Shown here: positions 1 to 54,992 of the stretch, piece by piece
How positions within the stretch are numbered: position 1 is the stretch's first letter
Layout: each line of letters begins with the position of its first letter
Source: Macrostomum lignano
Taxonomy: Eukaryota
Assembly: GCA_002269645.1 (NCBI GenBank)
Contig: NIVC01001149.1
Location: forward strand, 124,001 to 188,000
Reading direction: 5' to 3'
Length of the DNA: 64,000 nt
Translations under genes and position numbers: made by a program
The notes under the pieces: model-generated
The model's input: only the letters and a program-made list of their open reading frames with translations
Databases searched by the model: none
Told to the model about the DNA's origin: nothing

Positions 1-1
1 C

Positions 2-3000
2 GAATCAATAATCAGAGATCAGATTGTCCTCGGAATCAGAGACACAGAGTTGCGAGAACGGCTTCTACGTGAGCAGGAGTTGACGCTAGATAAGGCTATA
101 TCTATCTGCCGTGCAATTGAATCATCAAAGACCCAAGTGCGGATCATGACGGGAAACACCTCAGGAGAGATTTCGAAATACATCCAGAAAGAAGTCAATT
201 CTGTTGTGAAGCCTCGCTCAACAGGCAGACCAGATCTCAAGTACAAGGAGAGATGACCGAACAAAAGGTTTGGGTCCAATGGAAAGCCGATGGTAGGAAA
301 GTCGGAGGGTTGCTCATTCTGTGGTAAGAAACACAAGAAAGGTTCATGCCCTGCATATGGCAAGACGTGCAAATCTTGCGGAAAGCAAAACCACTTCAGC
401 AACGTTTGTCGGAATAAGACCGTAAGAGCCTTGGATCGAAATACAAATGAAAGCTCAGAATCTGATCGTCAAGATTCGTGGGTCATGTCAGCATCTCTGC
501 GACCGGGTGGCAACGACAGAGACAGTAGAACAACTGTTGGTATCAAAATCGAAGGTCAGCTGGTGAATTGCAAATGCGACACAGGAGCGGACGCAAATGT
601 ACTCCCTGAACATCTGCTTAGGCGGATTGCACCAAACACGTCGATACAAGCAACGTCTTGCAGACTCTTTTGCTATAAAAGGTCGCGCCTAACAGTCGCA
701 GGGAAGGTACAATTGAAACTGGAATATGAAGGAGTCAAGCATGAAAATGAATTTATTGTGATTAAAGAGAGGCTCATTCCACTCATCGGATGGAAAACTG
801 CAGAAGAGATAGGCCTGGTGAAATTCAACTTCGGAGTTTCTGTTCAACCTGAAGGGTTTAAGTCCACGTGGACAGATGAAAGATTTCTTCGAGAGTATCC
901 CGATGTCTTTGAAGGAACAGGTTGCTTACCTGGGAGTTATCACATCAGCCTGCGCGATGACAAAGAATCTTGGACGGATCGCCCTCGAAGAATCCCGTTT
1001 GCAGCAATGCAACCTTTGAAGGCTGAATTAGATCGCCTGGTTTCGGATGGACTCATCACCAAGTGTGATGAGCCCACGAAGTACGTTTCAAATGTGGTCG
1101 TCGTCTGGAAGGCAGACAAGACTATACGTCTTTGCCTAGACCCTCAGCATCTGAATGCCAACATAATGAGAGAGTAGTATCAGATACCGTCTTATGACGA
1201 AATTATTGCAGAAATCGGAAACGCTGCTCTGTTCTCAACTTTTGATGCGACTGCGAGTTTTCACCAGATTGCATTGGATTATGAAAGTTCGTTGATGACG
1301 TGCTTTCACACACCTTTTGGACGATATCGTTGGCTGAAAATGCCCTATGGAATTTGTTCCGCATCGGAAGTCTACCAGAAGCGAGTTCGGGAGGAGATCT
1401 CGGACAAGATCACAAACTGCAACAATTTTATTGACGACTTCATTGTTTGGGGCAAGACTGTCGAAGAACACGATGAAGCTGTGAAGCAGCTTATGGAAAT
1501 GTGCCGTGCGAAGAATTTGCGCCTGAATTATAAAAAGCGGAAAGTCGGATTGAAGGAGTTGAAATTCCTCGGCAACATACTTTCGCACACCGGAATAAAA
1601 GTCGACCCAGACAAAGTAAAAGCAATGCGCGATATGCCCCGACCAGATACTCTATCCGGCAATGAGAGAAAGCAGCAACTTATGCGATTTCTAGGATGTG
1701 CAAATTTTTTGTCCAAATTTATTTCGGATCTGTCATCTAAGGCAGCACCGCTACGCACATTGCTGACGAAGAATGCTCAGTGGAACTGGACAAATGAACA
1801 CGAAAAAGCGTACGAATCAATTTTGCAGAGTCTTTGCGACACACCAGTCTTAGCTCGCTATAACCCGAATGCACCACTTACTCTGTCAGTCGATGCTAGT
1901 CAACACGGTCTCGGAGCAACTATCCTGCAAGATGGACACCCGCTGGAATACGCTTCGTCATCATTGACGCCATCCCAACGGAAGTATGCTCAGATCGAAA
2001 AGGAACTTTTGGCTATTGTGTTTGGCTGCAAGCGATTCCACCAGTACGTCTGGGGACACAAGGTAACGGTCGAGAGCGACCACAAGCCGCTAGAGAACAT
2101 CTTCCGGAAGCCAATTTCAACTCTTACAGCAAGATTACAGAGACTGATGCTACTAGTTCAGAAGTACGACCTGCACATTATATACGTTCCCGGTAAAGAC
2201 TTGCACATTTCAGACACTCTAAGCCGCGCTTTCTTAAAGAACGTACATGCCTCTAAACAACTCGAAGATGACATCGAAGGTCACGTGCTCGGTGTTAGAA
2301 TGTCGGTTGGATTCCCAGAACTGATGCAGAAACTGGAAAATGAAACGGCAAAGGACTCAACACTGCAACAACTCGCTGAGATCATCGGTGTTGGTTGGCC
2401 TCACCACAGAAGCCAGCTCGTGACTGAGCTTCGTTGTTTCTGGAACGTCAGACATGATCTGACTGCGCATGGCAATCTGATCTGGATGAAGAACCGAATA
2501 GTCGTTCCAAACTCAATGAGAATGGAAGTGCTACAGAAGCTGCATACTGGACACCCTGGAATTGTGAAGGCAAGCTTAAAGGCGTCAGAGAGCGTCTACT
2601 GGCCTGGAATTAGATGTGATATTCAAGAAATGACTTCAGCGTGCATTGCCTGCCAGGAAAGCCAAAGAAAGCCACAGAAGGAACCGATGGTGGCTCAGTG
2701 CCTACCGGACTACCCATTTCAGGAATGTGGCACGGATATTTTCCATATTGACGGGAAGAATTTCCTGATATATGTTGATAAATACAGTCGGATGATCGAA
2801 TACGCTAGGATCAACAATACTTCAGCTGCCTCTGTGATTCCCCAACTAAAGAAGTATTTCCAGACCTATGGAGTTTGCGAGATTTTAAGATCTGACAATG
2901 GACCTCCATTCTCGGGAAGAGAATTTGGTCGTTTCGCGAAAGAGTACGGCTTCAAGCATGCTACATCATCGCCGAAGTACAGCCAGTCCAACGGATTAGC

Positions 3001-3688
3001 GGAAAGAGGCGTTCAAACGATCAAGAATATTTTAAAGAAGGTTCTGAAGAGCAATGAAGGCGAGCACATGGCACTGCTGCATTACAAGAACACTCCTATC
3101 GAGCATGGAATGCCATCACCCGCTGAGCTAGTCTTTGGACACAAACTGCGCTATGATTTGCCGATCCCAAAAGCAGATCTAATTCCTAGACAGGTCATGT
3201 CCAGGAAAGTACTGCAGAAGCTAAAGGACCAGCAGAACACTGCCGAAGAATATTACAACCGTGGATCTAAGGAGAGGAGAGAATTTGGTTGTGGAGAAAA
3301 GGTTTGGATGCAAGAATCAACACGACGATGGCAGCCAGCAGAAGTGCACATGAGAGTGAATGACCGTTCTTATATAGTTCGCGATGAACAAGGAAAGCTA
3401 CTACGTCGGAACAAATCGTTTTTGACTCAACGGACTGGAGCAGCAGAAGAAATCGCTGTTCCACAAAGAGAAACCCTTGAAGACGCATTCGGAAAGGACA
3501 CTACCGCACCACTGAAAGCTTCTCAAAGTCAACCGGATAAGCACGAAGCAGTGGAGGAAAATATAGGCAGCAAACCATCAGCACAAGCACCTAATGCACA
3601 ACAATGTCAGTCACCTAGGACGACAAATGGCTATACAACACGGAGTGGACGTGTGGTGAAGCCAGTCGTGCGATTTCAGGCACATTGA
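2..3688 (+). pseudogene. gag-pol polyprotein with two in-frame nonsense codons
   Basis: ORFs 50-256, 290-1177 and 1274-3688 are all in the same frame, separated only by TGA at 254-256 and TAG at 1175-1177 (inside RT, context RE*YQIP). Ends with the typical TRSGRVVKP tail and TGA at 3686-3688. Confidence 0.88.
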
Positions 3689-20373: not shown

Positions 20374-21078
20374 ATGGCGCCACCCACTGAGTCAACTGTT
20401 GCACTCAAGCTGCCCACGTTTTGGGCCATGCAGCCACGCGCGTGGTTCATCCAGGCAGAGGCCCAGTTCCAGCTGCGCGGCATCACCCAGGACGACACCA
20501 AGTATCACCACTTGGTCGCCTCGCTTGATCAACAAACCGCCGAGCGCCTGCTGGACGTTCTGGAAAGCCCTCCGAGCGAGGACAAATACGGCAAACTGAA
20601 AGGGCGCCTGCTCGGCACTTTCAGTCTCACCCGGCAGCAGCGAGCTAGCCGTTTGCTCAGCATGTCCGGCCTGGGAGATCGCCGGCCGTCCGAGATGATG
20701 GACGAGATGCTGGCCCTGCTTGGTGATCACCGGCCTTGCCTGCTCTTTGAGGAGCTGTTCCGCCAGCAGCTGCCCGTGGACATCCGGATGGCGCTCGCAT
20801 CCGCCGACTTCGAAGACCCCCGGGCAGTCGCGCAGCTCGCCGACCAGCTCTGGGCCAGCCGGCCCCAGCCAGTGGCCGCTTCCGCCCAGTTGGCAGGTCC
20901 GCCGGAGGTTTGCGCTGCGCGTCAGGCTGCGCGTCCCCGCACCACGTCGCCCCGGCCTGGGCACCGCGGCACCCGCGCCCAGGAGCTGTGCTACTTCCAC
21001 CGCAAGTTCGGCGCGACGGCTAGGCAATGCGAGCAGCCCTGCAGCTTTCCGGGAAACGGGCCGGCCGGCCGCCAGTGA
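20374..21078 (+). CDS. Gag protein of Gypsy element 2 (234 aa)
   Basis: ATG-initiated; KLPTFW...[17 protein letters not shown] motif typical of this Gypsy gag family; C-terminal [16 protein letters not shown] Cys/His motif. Confidence 0.9.
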
Positions 21079-21095
21079 CCATCGCGGCGGCCGGC
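21051..21095 (+). promoter_or_regulatory. -1 programmed ribosomal frameshift signal (G GGA AAC + 6-nt spacer + GC stem-loop)
   Basis: Heptamer 21051-21057 is in gag phase; pol is in the -1 frame; GCCGGCCGCC (21064-21073) pairs perfectly with GGCGGCCGGC (21086-21095). Confidence 0.85.
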
Positions 21096-23878
21096 AACCT
21101 GCTGCTCATCCCCGACGTCCCATCCGGCCGGCGGTTCCTGGTGGACACAGGCGCCGAGGTAAGCATTTTCCCAGCCTCTGCAGATGATGCCCGCGCCCGT
21201 TCACCTGGCCCGCCGCTGTTCGCCGCGAACGGCACCCGCATCCGAACCTTCGGCGGCCGCAGCATCACACTGGACGTCGGCCTGAAGACCTGCACCTGGC
21301 CATTCGTGTTGGCTGAGGTCTCCCGGCCGTTGATCGGCGCCGACTTCCTGCGCCACCACGGCCTGCTGGTGGACCTGCCCAACCGCCGCCTTCTGGACGC
21401 CGCCTCCCTGGCCAGTGTGCAATTGCTGGCTGGCTCCGGTTCTGCGCCTCAGCTCGCCGCCGCGGTTGCCAGGGACCCGTACAGCCGGTTGCTGGCGGAG
21501 TTCCCCAGCATCACGGAGCCCAGTTTCAGCAAAGCCACGCCGCGGCACGGCGTGGAGCACTACATCCCGACGACGGGCCCGCCGGTGCACGCTAGAGCGC
21601 GCCGCCTGCCGCCCGACAAGCTGGCCGCGGCCAAGGAAGAGTTTCGCAACCTGGAGCAGCTCGGCATTGTGCGGCGGTCCAGCAGCCCCTGGTCCTCGCC
21701 GCTGCACATGGTGCCCAAGACTTCCGGCGGTTGGCTGCCCTGTGGCGATTTCCGGCGGCTCAATGACGCCACGGTGCCCGACCGCTACCCCGTGCCGCAT
21801 ATCCAGGATTTCTCAGCGCGCCTGAGCGGCTGCACAGTGTTCTCGAAGATCGACCTGGTGCGGGGCTACCACCAGATCCCGGTCGCGCAAACGGACATCC
21901 CGAAGACCGCCGTCATTACACCGTTTGGGTTGTTTGAGTTCCTCCGCATGCCGTTCGGGTTGAAAAATGCGGCACAGGCCTTCCAGCGGTTAGTAGATTC
22001 TATCTGCCAGGACCTGCCGGCCGTCTTCGCGTACATCGACGATTTCCTGGTCGCCAGCAGCAGCCCCGAGCAGCACGAGGAGCACCTGCGGAAGCTGTTC
22101 CAGCGCCTCGCCGACAACGGCCTGTTGCTCAACCCAGCCAAGTGCCAGTTTGGCCGCAGCGAGATCGATTTCCTCGGCCACAGGATCAGCGCTGCGGGCG
22201 CCATGCCGCTGCCGGACAAGGTCGACGCAGTCCTCGAGCAGCGTGTCGGCCCCGCCTGGCAGCCGCTCGCATTCTTCAGCCGGCAGTTGCGACCTGCGGA
22301 GGTAAAGTACAGTGCCTTCGACCGCGAGCTCCTGGCACTGTACCTAGCGGTCCGCCACTTCCGTTACCTCCTTGAGGGGCGCCACTTCACAGCCTACACG
22401 GACCACAAGCCGTTGGCCGCCGCCATGGCCAAGCTGTCCGACCCGTGGTCCGCTCGGCAGCAGCGGCACCTGGCGTACGTGAGCGAATTCACCACGGACG
22501 TCCAGCACATCGCCGGCAAAAACAATCCGGTGGCCGACGCGCTGTCCCGCTGCACCGTGGCCAGCGTGCTACCCGGCATCGATTTTGCAGCGATGTCGCA
22601 GGCCCAGCATGCCCCGACCGAGTTGCCGCCGCCCGGCTCCGGCCTCCGACTGGAGCGCGTGACCCTCCGCCCAGGCCTGGAGCTGCTCTGCGACGTCTCC
22701 ACCGGCCATCCCCGCCCGCTGGTGCCGCCCGAATTTCGACGGCCGGTGTTCGACGCCATCCACGGCCTTGCGCACCCATCAATCCGCAGCTCCCGCCGCC
22801 TCGTTGCAGACCGTTTCGTCTGGCCCGGCCTCAACCGCGACGTCGGCCGTTGGGCTCGCAGCTGCCTCGCCTGCCAGACGACTAAGGTCCAGCAGCATGT
22901 TGTCAGCCCGCCAGACAGCATCCCGGTTCCCCGCGACCGCTTCGCGCACGTGCACATCGACCTGGTGGGCCCGCTTCCGCACTCTCAAGGGTGCTCGCAC
23001 CTGCTGACCGTTGTCGACCGGTTCACGCGTTGGCCGGAAGCAATTCCGTTGGCAGACACGTCCGCCGCTACCTGTGCGGCCGCATTCATCGCGCACTGGA
23101 TTGCCCGTTTCGGTGTGCCAAGCGACCTCACGTCAGACCGCGGCCCGCAGTTCACCTCGGAGCTGTGGTCCAACGTGTCCCGCTTGCTTGGCACGCAGCT
23201 GCACCAGACGACGGCCTTCCACCCACAGGCCAACGGGCTTGTGGAGCGGTTCCACCGGCAGCTCAAGGCTTCCCTGATGGCGCGGCTGACGGGGCCGTCC
23301 TGGACTGCCGAGCTGCCCTGGGTGTTGCTCGGCATCCGCACCGCTCCCAAGGAGGATCTCGGCACGTCATCGGCGGAGTTGGTGTACGGAGTCCCACTGG
23401 CGGTGCCGGGCGAGTGTCTGCAGACCAGCTCGCCTACGGGCCATGACGGGTTCCTCGCGCGCCTGCGCCAGGCCGTGCAGGCTTTCCGCCCGCCACCGAC
23501 CTCCCAGCATGGCCGCCGCCCCACGTCTTCGTCCGCCGCGACGGGCACCGACCGGCGCTGCAACCGCCTTATCTAGGTCCCTTCAAAGTGCTGGAGCGCG
23601 GCGCTAAGGCTTTCCTCCTCGACCTCGTCACTAGGCGGGACTTCGTGTCGGTGGACCGGCTCAAGCCAGCGGCGCTTGACCCTGCGAGCCCGGTTTCGAC
23701 GCCTCAAATTCGGCCAAGGGGGCGCCCACCGCGTGAGCCCACCGTCCCGGGCGCCGCGACGGCCGAACCGCTGCGCCGCCGCCCGCCGCGGCGCCGCCAG
23801 CCACGCCGCCGTTGCCGTCGAGTACCGGAGGCCACCGCTGGGGGGAGCCGTGTGGCGGACAAGTGCAAGCACACCTGA
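21057..23878 (+). pseudogene. Pol of Gypsy element 2 with an in-frame RT-thumb/RNase H deletion and a frameshifted integrase C-terminus
   Basis: Protease [12 protein letters not shown] ([21 protein letters not shown]), integrase ([26 protein letters not shown]). Sequence jumps from LPDKVDA straight to VLEQ (about 22230), lacking the thumb and the RNase H DAS motif. The HVFVR...QPPYLGPF...VSVDRLKPA tail is in another frame from about 23520. Confidence 0.85.
23840..23850 (+). other. polypurine tract of Gypsy element 2
   Basis: GGGGGGAG(CCG) directly before the 3' LTR. Confidence 0.75.
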
Positions 23879-27899: not shown

Positions 27900-44778
<16,879 letters not shown>

Positions 44779-45153: not shown

Positions 45154-45892
45154 GCCATACATAGTTGACCAGATATATCGGAGTTATATAAGATGTACTC
45201 CTTCTTTTTATGCTTTTACAGTGATGGCGGAGCTGAAGACCATCTGAACATCTGGCATAGCACAGCAAGGAACTTTGCAGCGTATTTTAAGACTTGCTAC
45301 TGTCTCAGCTTCATTATTTAAAGCTAATTTGAAACAGACAATTACAGACAAGGGGGAAATTATTTGAGGATTCAAACTTTTCATAATAAAGGTGTGTTAA
45401 TCCCCCAAAATTCAGGCTTCAGTTATGAGCTCACAATACAATGAAACTACAAATCGACAGCTGTACGAGCTGACGCACTTTCACCTTTTAAAAATTTAAA
45501 AAATTAAACCGTAATGCGTAAAACCAGTAAAACAAAAATCTGGCAAATTTCTGCTGGGGCGTAAAAAAGTGAAGCCGAGTTGCAAAGTGCCATTTTCAAA
45601 TTTTCCCTTCATTTTTATCGACTGAAATAACTGTGAAAAGGTTTCCAGCAGTAAAGTATTCTGTTTGCAATTGTCAGATCTAAAGCATCAGTCGAACTTC
45701 TCGAAGAGACACGAATGCAGAATCGATTGACCAGACCATAGTTGCTATGTGTCTCCTCACTTAAAGGAAAAGTTCCGTTGAGGTGCTTGTTATGGCAATT
45801 ATTATAACCACCAGCCTTCTTTCCCCCAAAGTGTGGAGTAGGAACAATCCGCATCCGACATTTAAAAATTCATTCCTTTATGAGACAGTCAT

Positions 45893-46073
45893 GTGTCAGG
45901 ACTAAAGCTGGACCTGTCCCTCAGCATCTCTCGGTACGTCATCCGATACCCAGTGCTGGCGTCTCCAACCCGGAACCCCGCGTACTCCGCATGCAGCTCA
46001 GAGCCGTTCCACAGCTTCATCTCCACTCTGAGGGTGGCGCCGCCCTGGCTGAGCGAGTGGATGGCGGAGAGAC
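45893..46073 (-). pseudogene. truncated third copy of the fibrinogen-domain exon (copy C)
   Basis: LSAIHSLSQGGATLRVEMKLWNGSELHAEYAGFRVGDASTGYRMTYREML is near-identical to 52384-52210, then homology stops. The adjacent intron (to about 46350) resembles intron sequence of copy B. Confidence 0.8.
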
Positions 46074-47476
46074 CTGCGGGAGGAGAGCGGCTGAGTCTGA
46101 GTCACTTCTGCTCGGCTTGTCGCCGCTGCTGTCAGGTGATTCGCAATGAAAATATTTTAACGCATCATAGCAGATGGTGCAGATAAAATTAGATTGATTT
46201 TGAGTTTGTCTTGTGTAGGCAATCTAAATTAATGCTAAAGCAGAATTAAAGCAGAATGAATTCTGCTTATGCAACTCACTTGAAAGCTGGCAGTGTTTCA
46301 GTTGGATAGCTTTTTGGCCTCCTCTACTCAGACTGCCAATCTTCCTCCAAGATGGGTTCTCAATTTGAATAGGACTAAGATAAGTTGAGCGGATTATCAT
46401 AGCTAGGATGTTATGCGAGGATAAATGGAAAATGTGAGATACTTGTGACTTTATTAAGAATCCTCTCATCGCAGTAAAATAAAACAATTTCTTACCTACA
46501 CCGTTTTTCAGGTGTACACTGCAGTGACACTCCCTATGTGATCGCTCTTTCTCCTTCTCTCTCTTCCTTGACAACAAGAAAAAGATATTAATTTCATCTG
46601 AAGTATCCATAGAAATGGAAATACTTCGTACCTTTAGAAATAGAAAATGAATATTTCTGGTAAAAATGCCCTGCTGAGTTGATTCCAAGCATTACTTGAG
46701 CAACTGGGAAATCTTTTAGAATTTCATACTCAAAGGAATTGAATGTTTCTGCTTATTCATTCATCTCATTACACCTGAATTTATTGTCACGCTTGCTAAA
46801 TGGCCAATCAATTTGTCAGTTTTCCTGGGGCACGAGTAAAAAGCGGAAGTGCAGCATCCCAGACCGCATCACCCCACCAGCCAGCCAACCGACCCGGCAC
46901 TTAAAACGCCCTTGACACCAACATAGTGTCATTGGTGTAAAAAACTTCTAGAGAACTATATGCGCGCTGACGAACCATGTCCAAACGCCTTGTTCCTACC
47001 GATGAGATGACACTCACTCCGAACCTCTGACTCTCACTTGCTCACATACCAGCATCTTCATTAACCCAGCAGCAGCTCTCAGCGAATCTGCGGATCTTCA
47101 CCATCAACTGCGAACACGCTCTCTGTTCTTGTGACACCTCCGATGAGTCCGTCTGCAGATCCATGCCTGGAGCTAATTGACATTTGTTTCTCGCAACTCG
47201 TAACTCAGCCTTTAACCATGTAACTCCTTTCTTAGTGCTTACCTTAGTTTTTGAGTTTTCTGAGTTCTTGAGTGTTAAAACTTTGATATAACTGAGAATT
47301 GCAAACAGCATCTGTGTATTTGAACTTTTCAGTCAGTAAAACTCTTGCAATATTGAAGATTTCGAGAAGCAGTAGTAGTTTGTGGTTAATAATTTGCAGA
47401 AGCAAGGCAATTAGTCTCAGAGTATTTTAGCTAGTAATATAAATCCGATAAAAACTAGCTGCTCAATTTTTTATGC

Positions 47477-49829
47477 TCAAATCTGCAGCATGAGCCGAAC
47501 TCCACGAAGAGACAGCGGGACAGAGCCAGTGTGCCAGATCATATTACTGTAATCTGCGGTCTCTCCCGAAAGAAAAATTCCGTTGGGGTTGGTGAAATGG
47601 CAGTTTTTAAACCACCAGCCTCCTTTTCCCCATATGTTTGAGCATGACTCAGTGCTGTCGTCATTGTCCCTGTCCTTCGTGGAGAACCGCATGCCTTTGC
47701 TGTGCTCCAAAGCGTCAAAGCTGACACTGGACCTGTGCCTCAGCATCTCTCGGTACGTCATCCGATACCCAGTGCTGGCGTCTCCCACCTGGAACCCCGC
47801 GTACTCCGCATGCAGCTCAGAGCCGTTCCACAGCTTCATCTCCACTCTGAGGGTGGCGCCGCCATGGTTAAGCGAGTGGATGGCGGAGAGACCTGAGGGA
47901 GGAGAGTGGCTGAGTCTGAGTCGATGAAAATCATGGGAGTAGCCTCCAGGTTCTCTGAAGCCACCAATGCAGCAGGAAAGGCCAATGTAGAGCATTACCA
48001 TCAAGATGCAAGTAGTTAATCGAAACATTTTAATCGGCTGAGCAGCCAATCATTCAATTCAACTTGCATCATTCGAAGCGCATGAGTCACAGAAATTTGT
48101 TATAAATCCACAAGATGTGCTTCTACTGCTGACACGCAATATTAGCTGATACAAAAAGGCCGCTCACCGATCCAGAAGTCAGTGCCCTCACCGAAGCCAG
48201 TCTCGTACTCAGTCCAGCTTCGTTGGAAACTCACTATGCCAGTAAGTCGCTGCTGAATCTTCAGGAAGCAGCGACCGTCTGGCTGCAGTTGAAACGCACT
48301 GGAAGAGTTCGCTGTGCGGTGAGCAGAGGCGCATTGCAGCCTTGCCCACGACTGGAGCAGCTCTCTGCATCTTCAGAAGGTTTCATTCTCCATGATGAAG
48401 TTATTCGGCTGGGTTCGAAAACGCACTGCTCAGCAACCAGCGATGTCACCCGCCACTGGACGTGTCGCCACAGGTCAGTGGGCTCCGTCAGCAAAGCAGA
48501 CCTGGAAGTCAGTGTCAGTGAACTTGCTTGCAGCACTGTTTGGACTAACACGCTTGTGCAAACGGATATTATAGATCCAGACCTGATCGTTATCTAATTT
48601 GTTTTCTGAAAACCAAAACACTACAAAACAAAATCGAAATAAACTCTACGCTCGCACTTAATCTCGTCTGGAATCAGGTATCAATAGCTCACAAAAATGT
48701 CAGCCAACCTGAGACCGCGGCACTCCCTTCAGTTTCTGCAGTACAGCCACAGCTGAGCGGACCTCCAGTCTGCCGACGCCATCAGCGGACCGACCTCGAA
48801 CCGAGCACTCAACGAAGAGCTCACCGATCTCTCAGCAGTCCACAGCCGCATGAAATCGACCGAGCCAGGCGACAAGTCGGCCAACTGAGTCCTCACAGCA
48901 TCGCGTGTGGCCTCATCTTGCAGCACCAGATCCAGTTTCAGGTAGTGCATGTCTCGGCTGTAGTCATACCTGACTGACTCGCTGCTCAAGCTGGAGACGT
49001 TGTGGCACAGCAGAGGCTCGATGAGGAAGTAGCCCTTCATGTTGAGTCTCTGGTGCACTCGGGCAGAGCAGTTCTCGAGATTGATGGAGCGGATGAATTT
49101 CAGCTGTCCGCATGTCGCCAGAGGTGAGAATTTTTGCCGGTTCAAGTCCAGATCAAAAATGCTGTCGTTTTGCAGCATGACGCGGCTCTGAATGTCATGG
49201 CAGGAGCCGTTCGCAATAATCGAAGCAATTAATTTCACTTTTTCAAGAGCCTGCCGAGGTGAATATTTGAAACGGTCTTGCATTTTAAACCACTAGATTT
49301 GTTTATTCAAAAATTGTATTTTCGACTGTCTCTGTTTTCGTACAAGCAAAGGCCAGCTATTTTTCTCCAGCGCCAGTCTGAGAGTGGCTACTGGTTCATT
49401 CGGAGTCCACAGGAAGCCCAACACTCGAATCGATGAGCGGGTGTCGGCCGAGACGCTGATGTTGGTCACGTTGGCGAAGCTTACAGAACTCGGTGACAGA
49501 TGCTGCATTTGGCGCTGAGCCTCTGCGAGCATTCCAGCATCCTTTATCAACACGGGAACATTGACATACTTTTGCTGAGCAATGGAGTCGAATCGAGCAG
49601 CAATGCCTCTCAGGCTGTCCGTCACGCACATGAGCGGCTCGACTGCCAAGTGCGGACCGTCGCTCGCTCCCGTGTCGTGCACGAACAGCGCGCAGCCGTT
49701 CACGCTGAGCTGCGCCACGAAGCGGAGCCGCAGAGAGTCAGCGGGAGCGCACTGGGAGACCTGGCCGGCTGCCAGCGAGCAGAGCAGCACAGCCAACGCT
49801 GCAGAAACTTGCAACTCATAGAGCGGCAT
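47477..49829 (-). pseudogene. secreted fibrinogen-related (FReD) gene, copy A, disrupted
   Basis: Exons 49829-49344, 49250-48709, 48501-48168, 47892-47477 are homologous to copy B. In-frame TGA at 48729-48731 (TTG in B) and a 7-nt deletion near 48352 (exon 334 vs 341 nt). The last exon is intact (FSTKDRDND, GGWWFKNCH). Confidence 0.78.
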
Positions 49830-51965: not shown

Positions 51966-54900
51966 TCAAATCTGCAGCATCAGCCGTACTTCACGAAGAG
52001 ACAGCGAGACGGAGCCAGAATGCCAGGTCATATACCTGCATTCTATTTTCTCTCGTGAAGGAAAAACCGCGTTAGGGTTGACGTGATGGCAGTCTTTAAA
52101 CCACCAGCCTCCTCTACCGCATTCGTTTGAGCATGAATAACGCGATACGTCATTGTCCCTGTCCATCGTGGAGAACCGCATGTCCTTGTGGTGCTCCAAA
52201 AAAGCGTCAAAGCTGACACTGGACCTGTGCCTCAGCATCTCTCGGTACGTCATCCGATACCCAGTGCTGGCGTCTCCCACCTGGAACCCCGCGTACTCCG
52301 CATGCAGCTCAGAGCCGTTCCACAGCTTCATCTCCACTCTGAGGGTGGCGCCGCCCTGGCTGAGCGAGTGGATGGCGGAGAGACCTGCGGGAGGAGAGCG
52401 GCTGAGTCTGAGTCACTTCTGCTCGGCTTGTCGCCGCTGCAGTCAGGTGAGTCGCGATTCGGATGTTCATGAAATTTTAAAAATATATCTCTATTAATTT
52501 TGAGCTTGTGTTGTGCTAAAAATCTGGATTAATGCGTGAATGAACTCCGCTGATGCATCCAGCTCCCTTTAAGGCTGGTAATGTTCCAGCTGGACGTGGA
52601 CGGCCTTTCTGCTTTTCTCCACTCAGACTGTGATATCTTTCTTCAAGATGAGCTTTCAAATTGAGCGGAGTATCATTCAGCTAAAATACATAAAAATGCG
52701 AGATATGAGATACCGCGTTCTGATAGACAAAATAATACTACATGTACTTCCACATCTACGAGTTCGCGTCGATTGCATCATATTTTTGCCTTGTGCACAC
52801 CGTGACTCGAGGGCGCAGTTGCGTAATCGCGCACGCTTTGACGCCTGCCTGTTCCCTGCACTCCTTTCCTCTGTGCTCTCGTTTGCAGCCACTTGACAGC
52901 TTGGCCGTGGCTGCTCTTTGTTCGCTACGGTCCAGAGGTCACTGGTGATTTCACTAGTGGCCCGCTTTTCCGTATCTTATGGCGGAATGGCGGAAGCTGG
53001 AAGACGTCAGGCTTCTGAAGAAGTGGCGCACGGTGTCCAGGCGCCTGGTTTCTATCTTGAGATGGCACTCATTTAACATAAAATTAGTCACCTAGTCACC
53101 TAAAAGCACAAGATCTGCTTTCACTCCTGTCATACAAAAAGGCTGCTCACCGATCCAGAAGTCAGTGCCCTCACCGAAGCCAGTCTCGTACTCAGTCCAG
53201 CTTCGTTGGAAACTCACTCTGTCAGTAAGTCGCTGCTGAATCTTCAGGAAGCAGCGACCGTCTGGCTGCAGTTGAAACGCACTGGAAGAGTCCACTGTGC
53301 GTTGAGCAGAGGCGCATTGCAGCCTTGCCCACGACTTCAGACTGGAGTAGCTCTCTGCATCTTCAGACGGTTTCATTCTCCATGATGAAGTGATTTTGCT
53401 GGACTTGGAGAGGCACTGCTCAGCAACCAGCGATGTCACCCGCCACTGGACGTGTCGCCACAGGTCAGTGGGCTCCGTCAGCACAGCAGACCTAGAAGTC
53501 ATCAATTGCTTTTTTGAAGGACAGTGCTACGGGGGAATACAAACCGAATTAGTACAAAACTGAAAAAATTCAACATCAAAAGCAAATAATTCGAATGCAT
53601 CCTAAGGCTCACTATGAAATTACTAGCCTTAGGTAGAAAACAGTAGGGGGTAATGATGCTGCTGAAATCTATGCATTTATTTTTTATATTGAAGAACTAT
53701 GGCATGTATGATGCTTTGCTTTTTTTCAGGTCAGGAATCTTAGTTTTATTCTTGCTAAGACTCTTGATGAAGCTGTTCAGCAAAGAGCATATAACTACCA
53801 GGTAGCAAAACTTAACTTAGAAAGTCCTGGACATGAAATTGTAAACCTGCTAAGGCAAAATGTCAGCCAACCTGAGATCGCGGCACTCCGTCAAGTTTCC
53901 GCAGTACAGCCGCAGCTGAGCGGACCTCCAGTCTGCCGACGCCATCAGCGGACCGACCTCGAACCGAGCACTCAACGAAGAGCTCACCGATCTCTCAGCA
54001 GTCCACAGCCGCATGAAATCGACCGAGCCAGGCGACAAGTCGGCCAACTGAGTCCTCACAGCATCGCGTGTGGCCTCATCTTGCAGCACCAGATCCAGTT
54101 TCAGGTAGTGCATGTCTCGGCTGTAGTCATACCTGACTGATTCGCTGCTCAAGCTGGAGACGTTGTGGCACAGCAGAGGCTCGATGAGGAAGTAGCCCTT
54201 CATGTTGAGTCTCTGGTGCACTCGGGCAGAGCAGTTCTCGAGATTGATGGAGCGGATGAATTTCAGCTGTCCGCATGTCGCCAGAGGTGAGAATTTTTGC
54301 CGGTTCAAGTCCAGATCGAAAATGCTGTCGTTTTGCAGCATGACGCGGCTCTGAATGTCATGGCAGGAGCCGTTCGCAATAATCGAAGCAGATAATTTCA
54401 CTTTTTCAAGAGCCTTCTGAGGTGAATGTTTGAAACGGTCTTGCATTTTAAACCATTGGATTTGTTTATTCAAAAATAGTACTTTCGACTGTCTCTGTTT
54501 TCGTACAAGCAAAGGCCAGCTATTTTTCTCTAGCGCCAGTCTTAGAGTGGCTACTGGCTCATTCGGAGTCCACAGGAAGCCCAACACTCGAACCGATGAG
54601 CGCGTGTCGGCTGACACGCTGATGTTGGTTACGTTAGCGAAGCTCACAGAACTCGGTGACAGATGCTGCAGTTGACGCTGAGCCTCTGCGAGCATCCCAG
54701 CATCCTTCATCAACACGGGAACATTAACATACTTTTGCTGAGCGATTGAGTCAAATCGAGCAGCAATGCCTCTCAGGCTGTCCATCACGCACATGAGTGG
54801 CTCGACTGCCAAGTGCGGACCGTCGCTCGCTCCCGTGTCGTGCACGAACAGCGCGCAGCCGTTCACGCTGAGCTGCGCCACGAAGCGGAGCCGCAGAGAG

Positions 54901-54992
54901 TCAGCGGGAGCGCACTGGGAGACCTGGCCGGCTGCCAGCGAGCAGAGCAGCAGAGCCAACGCTGCAGAAACTTGCAACTCATAGAGCGGCAT
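51966..54992 (-). CDS. secreted fibrinogen C-terminal domain protein with unrecognised duplicated N-terminal domain, copy B (595 aa, or 626 aa if the 93-nt intron is retained)
   Basis: Exons 54992-54507, 54413-53872, 53491-53151, 52384-51966 with compatible phases. Signal peptide MPLYELQVSAALALLLCSLAAG; FReD motifs IQQR, FQRSWTEYETGFG, DFWIG-LSAIHSL, LRVEM, FSTMDRDND, GGWWFKDCH, NPN, RLMLQI. Confidence 0.85.

Follow-up and report, generated by a model that had tools for sequence, protein, structure and literature searches.

A FReD lectin architecture with an undescribed candidate scaffold module in the flatworm Macrostomum lignano

In the ficolins and collectins, a single type of stalk, built of collagen, is shared by two kinds of lectin head, the FReD of the ficolins and the C-type lectin domain of the collectins. 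The VIgL proteins of the snail Biomphalaria glabrata (FREPs, CREPs and GREPs) are likewise secreted and form a diversified multigene family in which a common N-terminal region, defined by one or two IgSF domains, precedes a FReD, C-type lectin or galectin head (PMC5433772). Here we describe a gene in a 64,000-nucleotide stretch of the genome of the free-living flatworm Macrostomum lignano (contig NIVC01001149.1, positions 124,001 to 188,000 of the forward strand, assembly GCA_002269645.1; hereafter the window) whose product carries two copies of a different module ahead of a FReD. On balance, the gene probably encodes a secreted lectin that consists of a signal peptide, two previously undescribed modules and the FReD, with the modules serving as a scaffold.

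A tandem module ahead of the FReD

The gene corresponds to M. lignano Mlig019144g2 and encodes, in order, a signal peptide, two repeated units beginning in exon 1, and a FReD (Table 1; residue 1 is the ATG at 54992 on the minus strand). The 1881-nt coding sequence is open through all three rebuilt exons, which are joined at canonical splice sites. Its product is 98% identical to the annotated protein P0001 (BOX15_Mlig019144g2) with matching junctions, and the same exon junctions are found in the annotated paralogues. The signal peptide was called by direct reading of the sequence, with no dedicated predictor, and it is conserved among the paralogues. All 21 relatives of the exon 1 product retrieved in the first round of searching came from M. 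lignano.

A preliminary description of the locus, made from the letters alone, had proposed a tandemly duplicated domain of about 120 amino acids at 54890..53910, an interval that corresponds exactly to residues 35-361. The duplication is genuine: BLASTP between the two halves aligns residues 34-118 with 241-326 (E=5e-10, 28% identity), and hhalign of the paralogue profiles for the two repeats gives a probability of 96.3% and E=1.9e-9 over 88 columns. Furthermore, a hidden Markov model (HMM) built without the window protein, from the 12 units of two relatives that bear a C-type lectin domain, matches residues 25-157 (E=1.8e-23) and residues 242-404 (E=3.6e-41), the latter unbroken through 374-404. 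Both copies also show the motif pairs noticed at the outset and a pair of cysteines, C46/C68 in the first and C254/C275 in the second.

The proposed length, by contrast, was too short. The real unit comprises about 165-170 amino acids and runs from its first cysteine (C27 or C240) to its last (C210 or C400), as shown by aligning 28 units drawn from 11 proteins. A segment at residues ~374-404, originally taken for a separate PAN-like piece, is instead the conserved tail of unit 2, and it aligns with the tails of all 12 units of the C-type lectin proteins. It carries one cysteine, unlike PAN/Apple, an independent multi-cysteine module of ~80 amino acids, and PAN/Apple families gave zero Pfam matches at E<=10 in residues 374-626. 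The units share as near-invariant features a Glu-Pro ahead of the third cysteine, the motif LRLxC-x5-C and a tail patterned P..lW..v.W....v...C. Unit 2 of the window protein has the full set, with six cysteines and E271-P272; unit 1 retains C1, C2, C3 and C6 (C27, C46, C68 and C210) together with E64-P65, has lost C4 and C5, and contains an insert (residues ~155-195) rich in insertions and deletions. The unit is an autonomous module of ~165 amino acids.

The cysteines of the module vary in pairs. C2 and C3 are jointly present or absent in 28 of 28 units, as are C4 and C5, and C1 and C6 co-occur in most of them, the exceptions being truncated or displaced by a few residues. This pattern of co-occurrence suggests three disulfides, C1-C6, C2-C3 and C4-C5, of which the first would hold the N terminus of the unit beside its C terminus.

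An AlphaFold2 model of residues 236-404, computed on the 28-unit alignment, is confidently predicted, with a predicted local distance difference test score (pLDDT) of 95.1 (94.5-95.1 across five models) and a predicted template modelling score (pTM) of 0.87. The modelled elements follow the order five strands, helix, two strands, short helix, two strands, two helices, two strands. A full-length AlphaFold2 model on 14 paralogues reached a pLDDT of 32, FReD included, and was not used for structure searches.

We found no described domain or solved structure that accounts for this fold. Not one of the 28 units has an accepted Pfam match; a scan at E<=10 returned nothing near threshold and no family in more than two of the 28, and the significant match to a described domain that would have spoken against a new module did not appear. 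DUF2213, seen in two of the 28 units (E=0.013-0.2; 12-16 bits, cut-off 22), was dismissed as noise. Pfam finds nothing in exon 1 of the window protein, and Fibrinogen_C is the only family matched, in exons 2-3. Searched against PDB sequences, the unit profile had no match and a profile of the N-terminal region returned noise only (TRPC4, E=0.43; RH5, E=2.8). Foldseek of the unit model against 350,542 PDB chains gave none at E<=0.001 (best E=0.046), and the matches listed, mostly Fab fragments, had template modelling (TM) scores of ~0.2. The initial view that the domain is unrecognised, and that it is not an IgSF, collagen or EGF/FN3 domain, therefore stands for the families covered by Pfam; for the coiled coil also set aside at the outset, none was detected, without use of a dedicated predictor. 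We propose the module as a candidate new domain family, with neither a Pfam entry nor a solved relative.

The only match to the unit model in BFVD is A0A7S7YF07 of the amoeba-infecting giant virus Medusavirus stheno T3, an uncharacterised protein of 417 amino acids that is itself a predicted structure (E=2e-4, probability 1.00, query TM 0.59; 172 aligned columns, 14% identity). This likeness could reflect analogy or a very old relationship. It also bears on an explanation that we judge unlikely, namely that the unit has diverged, beyond the reach of these searches, within a known extracellular domain class, such as a ferredoxin-like or SEA-type beta-alpha-beta sandwich with an extra beta-sheet. 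Over its C-terminal two thirds the model does run strand-helix-strand-strand-(strand)-helix-strand, weak partial PDB matches were obtained to the KSHV LANA C-domain (probability 0.63) and ribosomal S24e (probability 0.47), and a viral model that matches the whole unit indicates a fold not confined to flatworms. The want of significant PDB and Pfam matches described above, however, argues against such a relationship.

Architectures, a shared intron and the FReD head

The module occurs in more than one context. It is found in two copies ahead of a FReD in P0022, P0024, P0027 and P0029, in one copy ahead of a FReD in P0030, and in six copies in proteins of ~1440 amino acids with a C-terminal C-type lectin domain (P0026/P0035/P0036); the FReD and Lectin_C heads were confirmed by Pfam. 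It is therefore a mobile building block, placed once or twice ahead of a FReD and six times ahead of a C-type lectin head. A further six-unit protein, 49% identical, is encoded in an RNA-seq assembly (P0023; SRR30276812, contig L001, 199..4587), and a fragment from a JGI metagenome contig (P0028; 3300040801, contig L002, 117..1438) contains two tandem units, as in the window gene. In P0023, a mucin-like DVPSATT run follows the signal peptide (residues ~40-97) and is lacking in the M. lignano relative. On L002 the units come after a long poly-Ala/Ser/Gln low-complexity sequence and are separated by a frame change. Several other models (P0017, P0025, P0037, P0039 and P0050) are fragmentary or fused and carry misleading automatic names (EST3, PHM7_ext, SHR-BD, CAP10) that mismatch their sequences; one is a FReD fused to the start of a dicarboxylate symporter.

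The two kinds of gene share an intron position. In the six-unit gene on M. lignano contig NIVC01000698.1 (L003, 5550..16150), an exon junction lies about five residues past Cys 5 in every unit (for example ..CVELR/SQLL.., ..EVLR/QQIA.., ..CRTLH/SNML.., ..CRDL/SSNL.., ..CEALV/QSLT.., the slash marking the junction), and intron 1 of the window gene occupies the same position in unit 2 as the introns within the six units of this gene. The common position indicates that the FReD and C-type lectin genes are of shared ancestry, and that the unit arrays grew by duplication of an exon of ~200 amino acids running from mid-unit to mid-unit. Exons of that kind in the six-unit gene are out of register with the structural unit.

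The taxonomic range recovered by searching is narrow. Profile A2, which covers the 400 N-terminal residues, retrieved 13 clusters from 1.84 billion representative proteins, and those with a species name are all from M. lignano; the medusavirus protein is absent from the 13, so that no link in sequence accompanies its structural likeness. A word-indexed search with the 28-unit alignment (A3) gave two fragments only, with no gain in range, and one with P0023 found itself and its M. lignano relative, with no further clusters of the six-unit family. A metagenome scan with six unit 2 sequences matched 49 patterns, of which 0 were confirmed.

The head of the window protein is a genuine FReD, as the preliminary description held together with the signal peptide and a variable part. 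Pfam PF00147 matches at 127.2 bits (cut-off 22; E=1.1e-36) over profile positions 36-217 of 221, the first ~35 positions being unmatched. Among PDB sequences it comes closest to the fibrinogen alphaE C domain (1.1e-24), followed by ficolin-1 (3.6e-23). At the sequence level, the calcium-site motif FSTMDRDND (558-566) aligns with FSTKDQDND of ficolin-1, and the pocket motif C572...C586-H587 aligns with its C...CH. The histidine position of the pocket differs between paralogues (CH, CY, CL, CR, CM), and the part that varies is the hypervariable P subdomain.

Taken together, these features suggest how the protein could work. The FReD head may depend on calcium to bind glycan or acetylated ligands, with a specificity that would differ between paralogues. 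The units could form a constant scaffold that spaces the heads, multimerises them or couples them to a conserved partner, in the manner of the collagen stalk of ficolins and collectins or the IgSF domains of snail FREPs and CREPs. The existence of members with a C-type lectin head and of single-copy members strengthens the view that the module is a scaffold joined to a lectin head.

Variation, locus evolution and expression

Among seven full-length close paralogues, variation is unevenly distributed over the protein (Table 1, mean pairwise identities). In addition, a stretch of ~80 amino acids in mid-unit 2 is ~83% identical in P0018, a paralogue that is itself 44-48% identical overall. Such strong conservation points to a conserved interaction surface and not to a passive spacer. 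It could also be taken to mean that ligand binding or effector action resides in the N-terminal units (for example as an aggregating or membrane-active domain or a second lectin), with the FReD and C-type lectin heads as accessories, and the six consecutive units of the C-type lectin proteins would then give a high valency. We consider this quite improbable: a diversified recognition site would be expected to vary, but it is the P subdomain of the FReD that does so while the units stay constant, and the units show no likeness to lectin or pore-forming folds in Foldseek and Pfam searches. A scaffold with a conserved contact surface remains our preferred interpretation of the units.

The window contains a second copy of the gene in tandem, inactivated by two in-frame stops in exon 1 (KQI*WFK and CRN*REC) and by a 7-nt deletion that shifts the frame in exon 2. 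Beyond it lies a lone, decayed FReD last exon, which may be what is left of a third gene or else an alternative terminal exon that has decayed. Synonymous divergence (dS) between the two window copies is a mosaic, higher in FReD P (0.24) and the unit 1 core (0.18) and lower in FReD B (0.03) and unit 2 (0.01). Such a pattern suggests gene conversion in patches, by which the constant parts are kept alike. The ratio of nonsynonymous to synonymous divergence (dN/dS) between the copies is ~0.9 in FReD P, a value that we do not take as proof of positive selection, since it is measured against a pseudogene and dS is a mosaic; in unit 1 it is 0.08, indicating purifying selection. Tandem duplication, gene conversion and decay thus shape the family in a birth-and-death manner, the units and the FReD core staying nearly constant and the P subdomain diverging.

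With a pseudogene adjoining the window gene, and several paralogues in the databases fragmentary or fused, the gene might itself be dead or an artefact of annotation or assembly. This is very improbable indeed, since its 626-codon frame runs uninterrupted over canonical splice sites, agrees with the transcript-based gene model Mlig019144.g2 and is under purifying selection in unit 1.

Expression data, at the level of the orthogroup, come from Brand et al. (2020; PMC7336406), where Mlig019144.g2 belongs to orthogroup OG0000014. This group of 73 transcripts includes 26 M. lignano genes and transcripts of M. spirale and M. hystrix, with none listed from M. pusillum, a content indicating that the family is at least genus-wide. 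In Table S5 of that study the positional classes of the orthogroup are Non-Specific (most), Tail and Testes, its final label is 'positional_mix', and its social label is OvI_up (higher in octets than in isolated worms); no fluorescence-activated cell sorting (FACS) class for neoblasts or germline is given for it there, nor any in situ annotation. These labels are compatible with an immune or a reproductive role alike. No paper naming the genes was found by their identifiers in a literature search, and the supplementary data of Grudniewska et al. (2018) do not contain them. The proteins treated in a bioadhesion paper that mentions fibrinogen and C-type lectin are unrelated.

It is possible, if rather unlikely in our judgement, that the family belongs to reproduction or gland secretion (seminal fluid, the sperm or egg surface, tail glands), in which case the variable FReD would reflect sexual conflict or gamete recognition. 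The Tail and Testes classes and the OvI_up label fit this explanation, as do fast turnover, tandem copies and restriction to the genus, which are typical of Macrostomum reproduction genes, the theme of PMC7336406. Against it stand the Non-Specific class, the mixed positional label and the lack of a germline or neoblast class and of in situ annotation.

Several points count against a secreted lectin built on an undescribed scaffold. An immune role, whether in pattern recognition or as an effector, is proposed here from sequences, and the mixed labels of OG0000014, with its up-regulation in octets relative to isolated worms, also fit a reproductive or secretory-gland role. One predicted structure in BFVD, that of Medusavirus stheno, does match the unit model, and the statement that the fold matches none known covers the PDB and BFVD. 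The wide search used a close-paralogue profile and may have overlooked relatives from beyond Macrostomum. The disulfide pairing is read solely from cysteine co-occurrence, and the fold from prediction.

Elsewhere in the window, two long open reading frames (ORFs) encode pol genes of long terminal repeat (LTR) retrotransposons, the second within a 20-24 kb block of 65-69% G+C, as against ~45% elsewhere in the window. The lectin cluster ends with the decayed FReD exon, and an ORF for a class C G-protein-coupled receptor comes just after it.

Table 1. Features of the window; identities are pairwise means over seven full-length close paralogues, and a slash in a motif marks a cleavage site or exon junction.
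Feature	Position	Strand	Residues	Identity	Remarks
Whole gene	51966..54992	(-)			Three coding exons, 626 aa; M. lignano Mlig019144g2
Exons 1, 2 and 3	54992..53872, 53491..53151, 52384..51966	(-)			Rebuilt with GT/AG introns; stop included
Signal peptide	54924..54992	(-)	1-23		MPLYELQVSAALALLLCSLAAGQ; hydrophobic core, then AAG/Q
Unit 1	54354..54920	(-)	~25-213		Tail SPQKALEKVKLSASIIANGSC
Unit 1 core			25-157	0.92	
Unit 1 insert/tail				0.40	Hypervariable insert at ~155-195
Unit 2			~236-404	0.90	
Unit 2, first part	53872..54287	(-)	236-374		In exon 1; C240, C254, C275, C364, C370
Intron 1	53492..53871	(-)			Cuts unit 2 five residues past Cys 5 (..ECRDLR/SAVL..)
Unit 2, tail	53401..53491	(-)	374-404		SAVLTEPTDLWRHVQWRVTSLVAEQC...; holds C400
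Linker	53272..53400	(-)	405-447	0.66	Holds divergent start of FReD A subdomain
FReD, first part	53151..53271	(-)	448-488		End of exon 2
FReD, second part and stop	51966..52384	(-)	488-626		
FReD A/B				0.92	
FReD P subdomain			538-626	0.61	
Tandem second gene copy, disabled	47480..49829	(-)			tblastn and translation; 95% identical in exon 1
Lone third FReD last exon, decayed	45677..46074	(-)			tblastn, 72% identity; acceptor intact, several stops
Class C receptor ORF	42767..44320	(+)			517 aa; nine-cysteine and 7tm_3 domains
LTR-retrotransposon pol ORF	1274..3688	(+)			Reverse transcriptase, RNase H, integrase
LTR-retrotransposon pol ORF	21027..23576	(+)			Reverse transcriptase, RNase H, integrase

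Comparison with known recognition systems

Whatever its role, a confidently predicted domain of ~165 amino acids that lacks both a Pfam entry and a solved relative merits a family entry and a structure. The shuffling of domains around a lineage-specific module, with two kinds of lectin head, can moreover be followed in a basal flatworm amenable to RNA interference (RNAi) and transgenesis. Should the proteins prove to be reproductive, they would constitute a new class of fast-evolving lectin-like reproductive proteins; should the scaffold interpretation be correct, they would offer a handle on the poorly known innate immunity of flatworms.

The window FReD shares the PF00147 domain of the fibrinogen chains, angiopoietins, tenascins, FIBCD1 and MFAP4, with E=1e-15 to 1e-24 to solved structures. 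Unlike the angiopoietins, tenascins and fibrinogen chains, the window protein has no EGF or FN3 match in Pfam, and neither a coiled coil, for which no dedicated predictor was used, nor a transmembrane part was detected; its N-terminal region is modelled as beta-rich globular units.

The likeness to the ficolins and collectins lies in the use of one module ahead of either a FReD or a Lectin_C head, and, at the level of the head, in ficolin-1 being the second-best solved sequence relative, with aligned FSTxDxDND and Cys-His motifs. The stalk differs, as the window protein has no collagen Pfam match and no run of at least four G-X-Y triplets; in place of collagen, the flatworm scaffold is predicted to be a globular, disulfide-stapled alpha/beta module in one, two or six copies. 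The flatworm family follows the same logic as the snail VIgL proteins, to which it is also similar in its variable FReD P subdomain and its tandem birth-and-death evolution. It departs from them in the module itself, with no Ig-family Pfam match in the protein or the 28 units at E<=10 and Fab matches in Foldseek at a TM of 0.2, and a galectin-headed flatworm member was not found. Lacking both a Gly-X-Y stalk and an IgSF domain, the window protein is a member of neither the ficolin/collectin group nor the snail VIgL family.

A bolder proposal, which we offer tentatively and hold to be somewhat doubtful, is that macrostomids invented the fold as a common stalk of FReD and C-type lectin families, that a near-invariant face of unit 2 docks an effector, and that the family represents a third independent humoral recognition system made of a constant scaffold and an exchangeable, diversifying lectin head, beside those with collagen and IgSF stalks. 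Under the broader interpretation that we favour, in which the module is the scaffold of a secreted lectin, the humoral lectins of animals would have converged repeatedly on one design with unrelated stalks.

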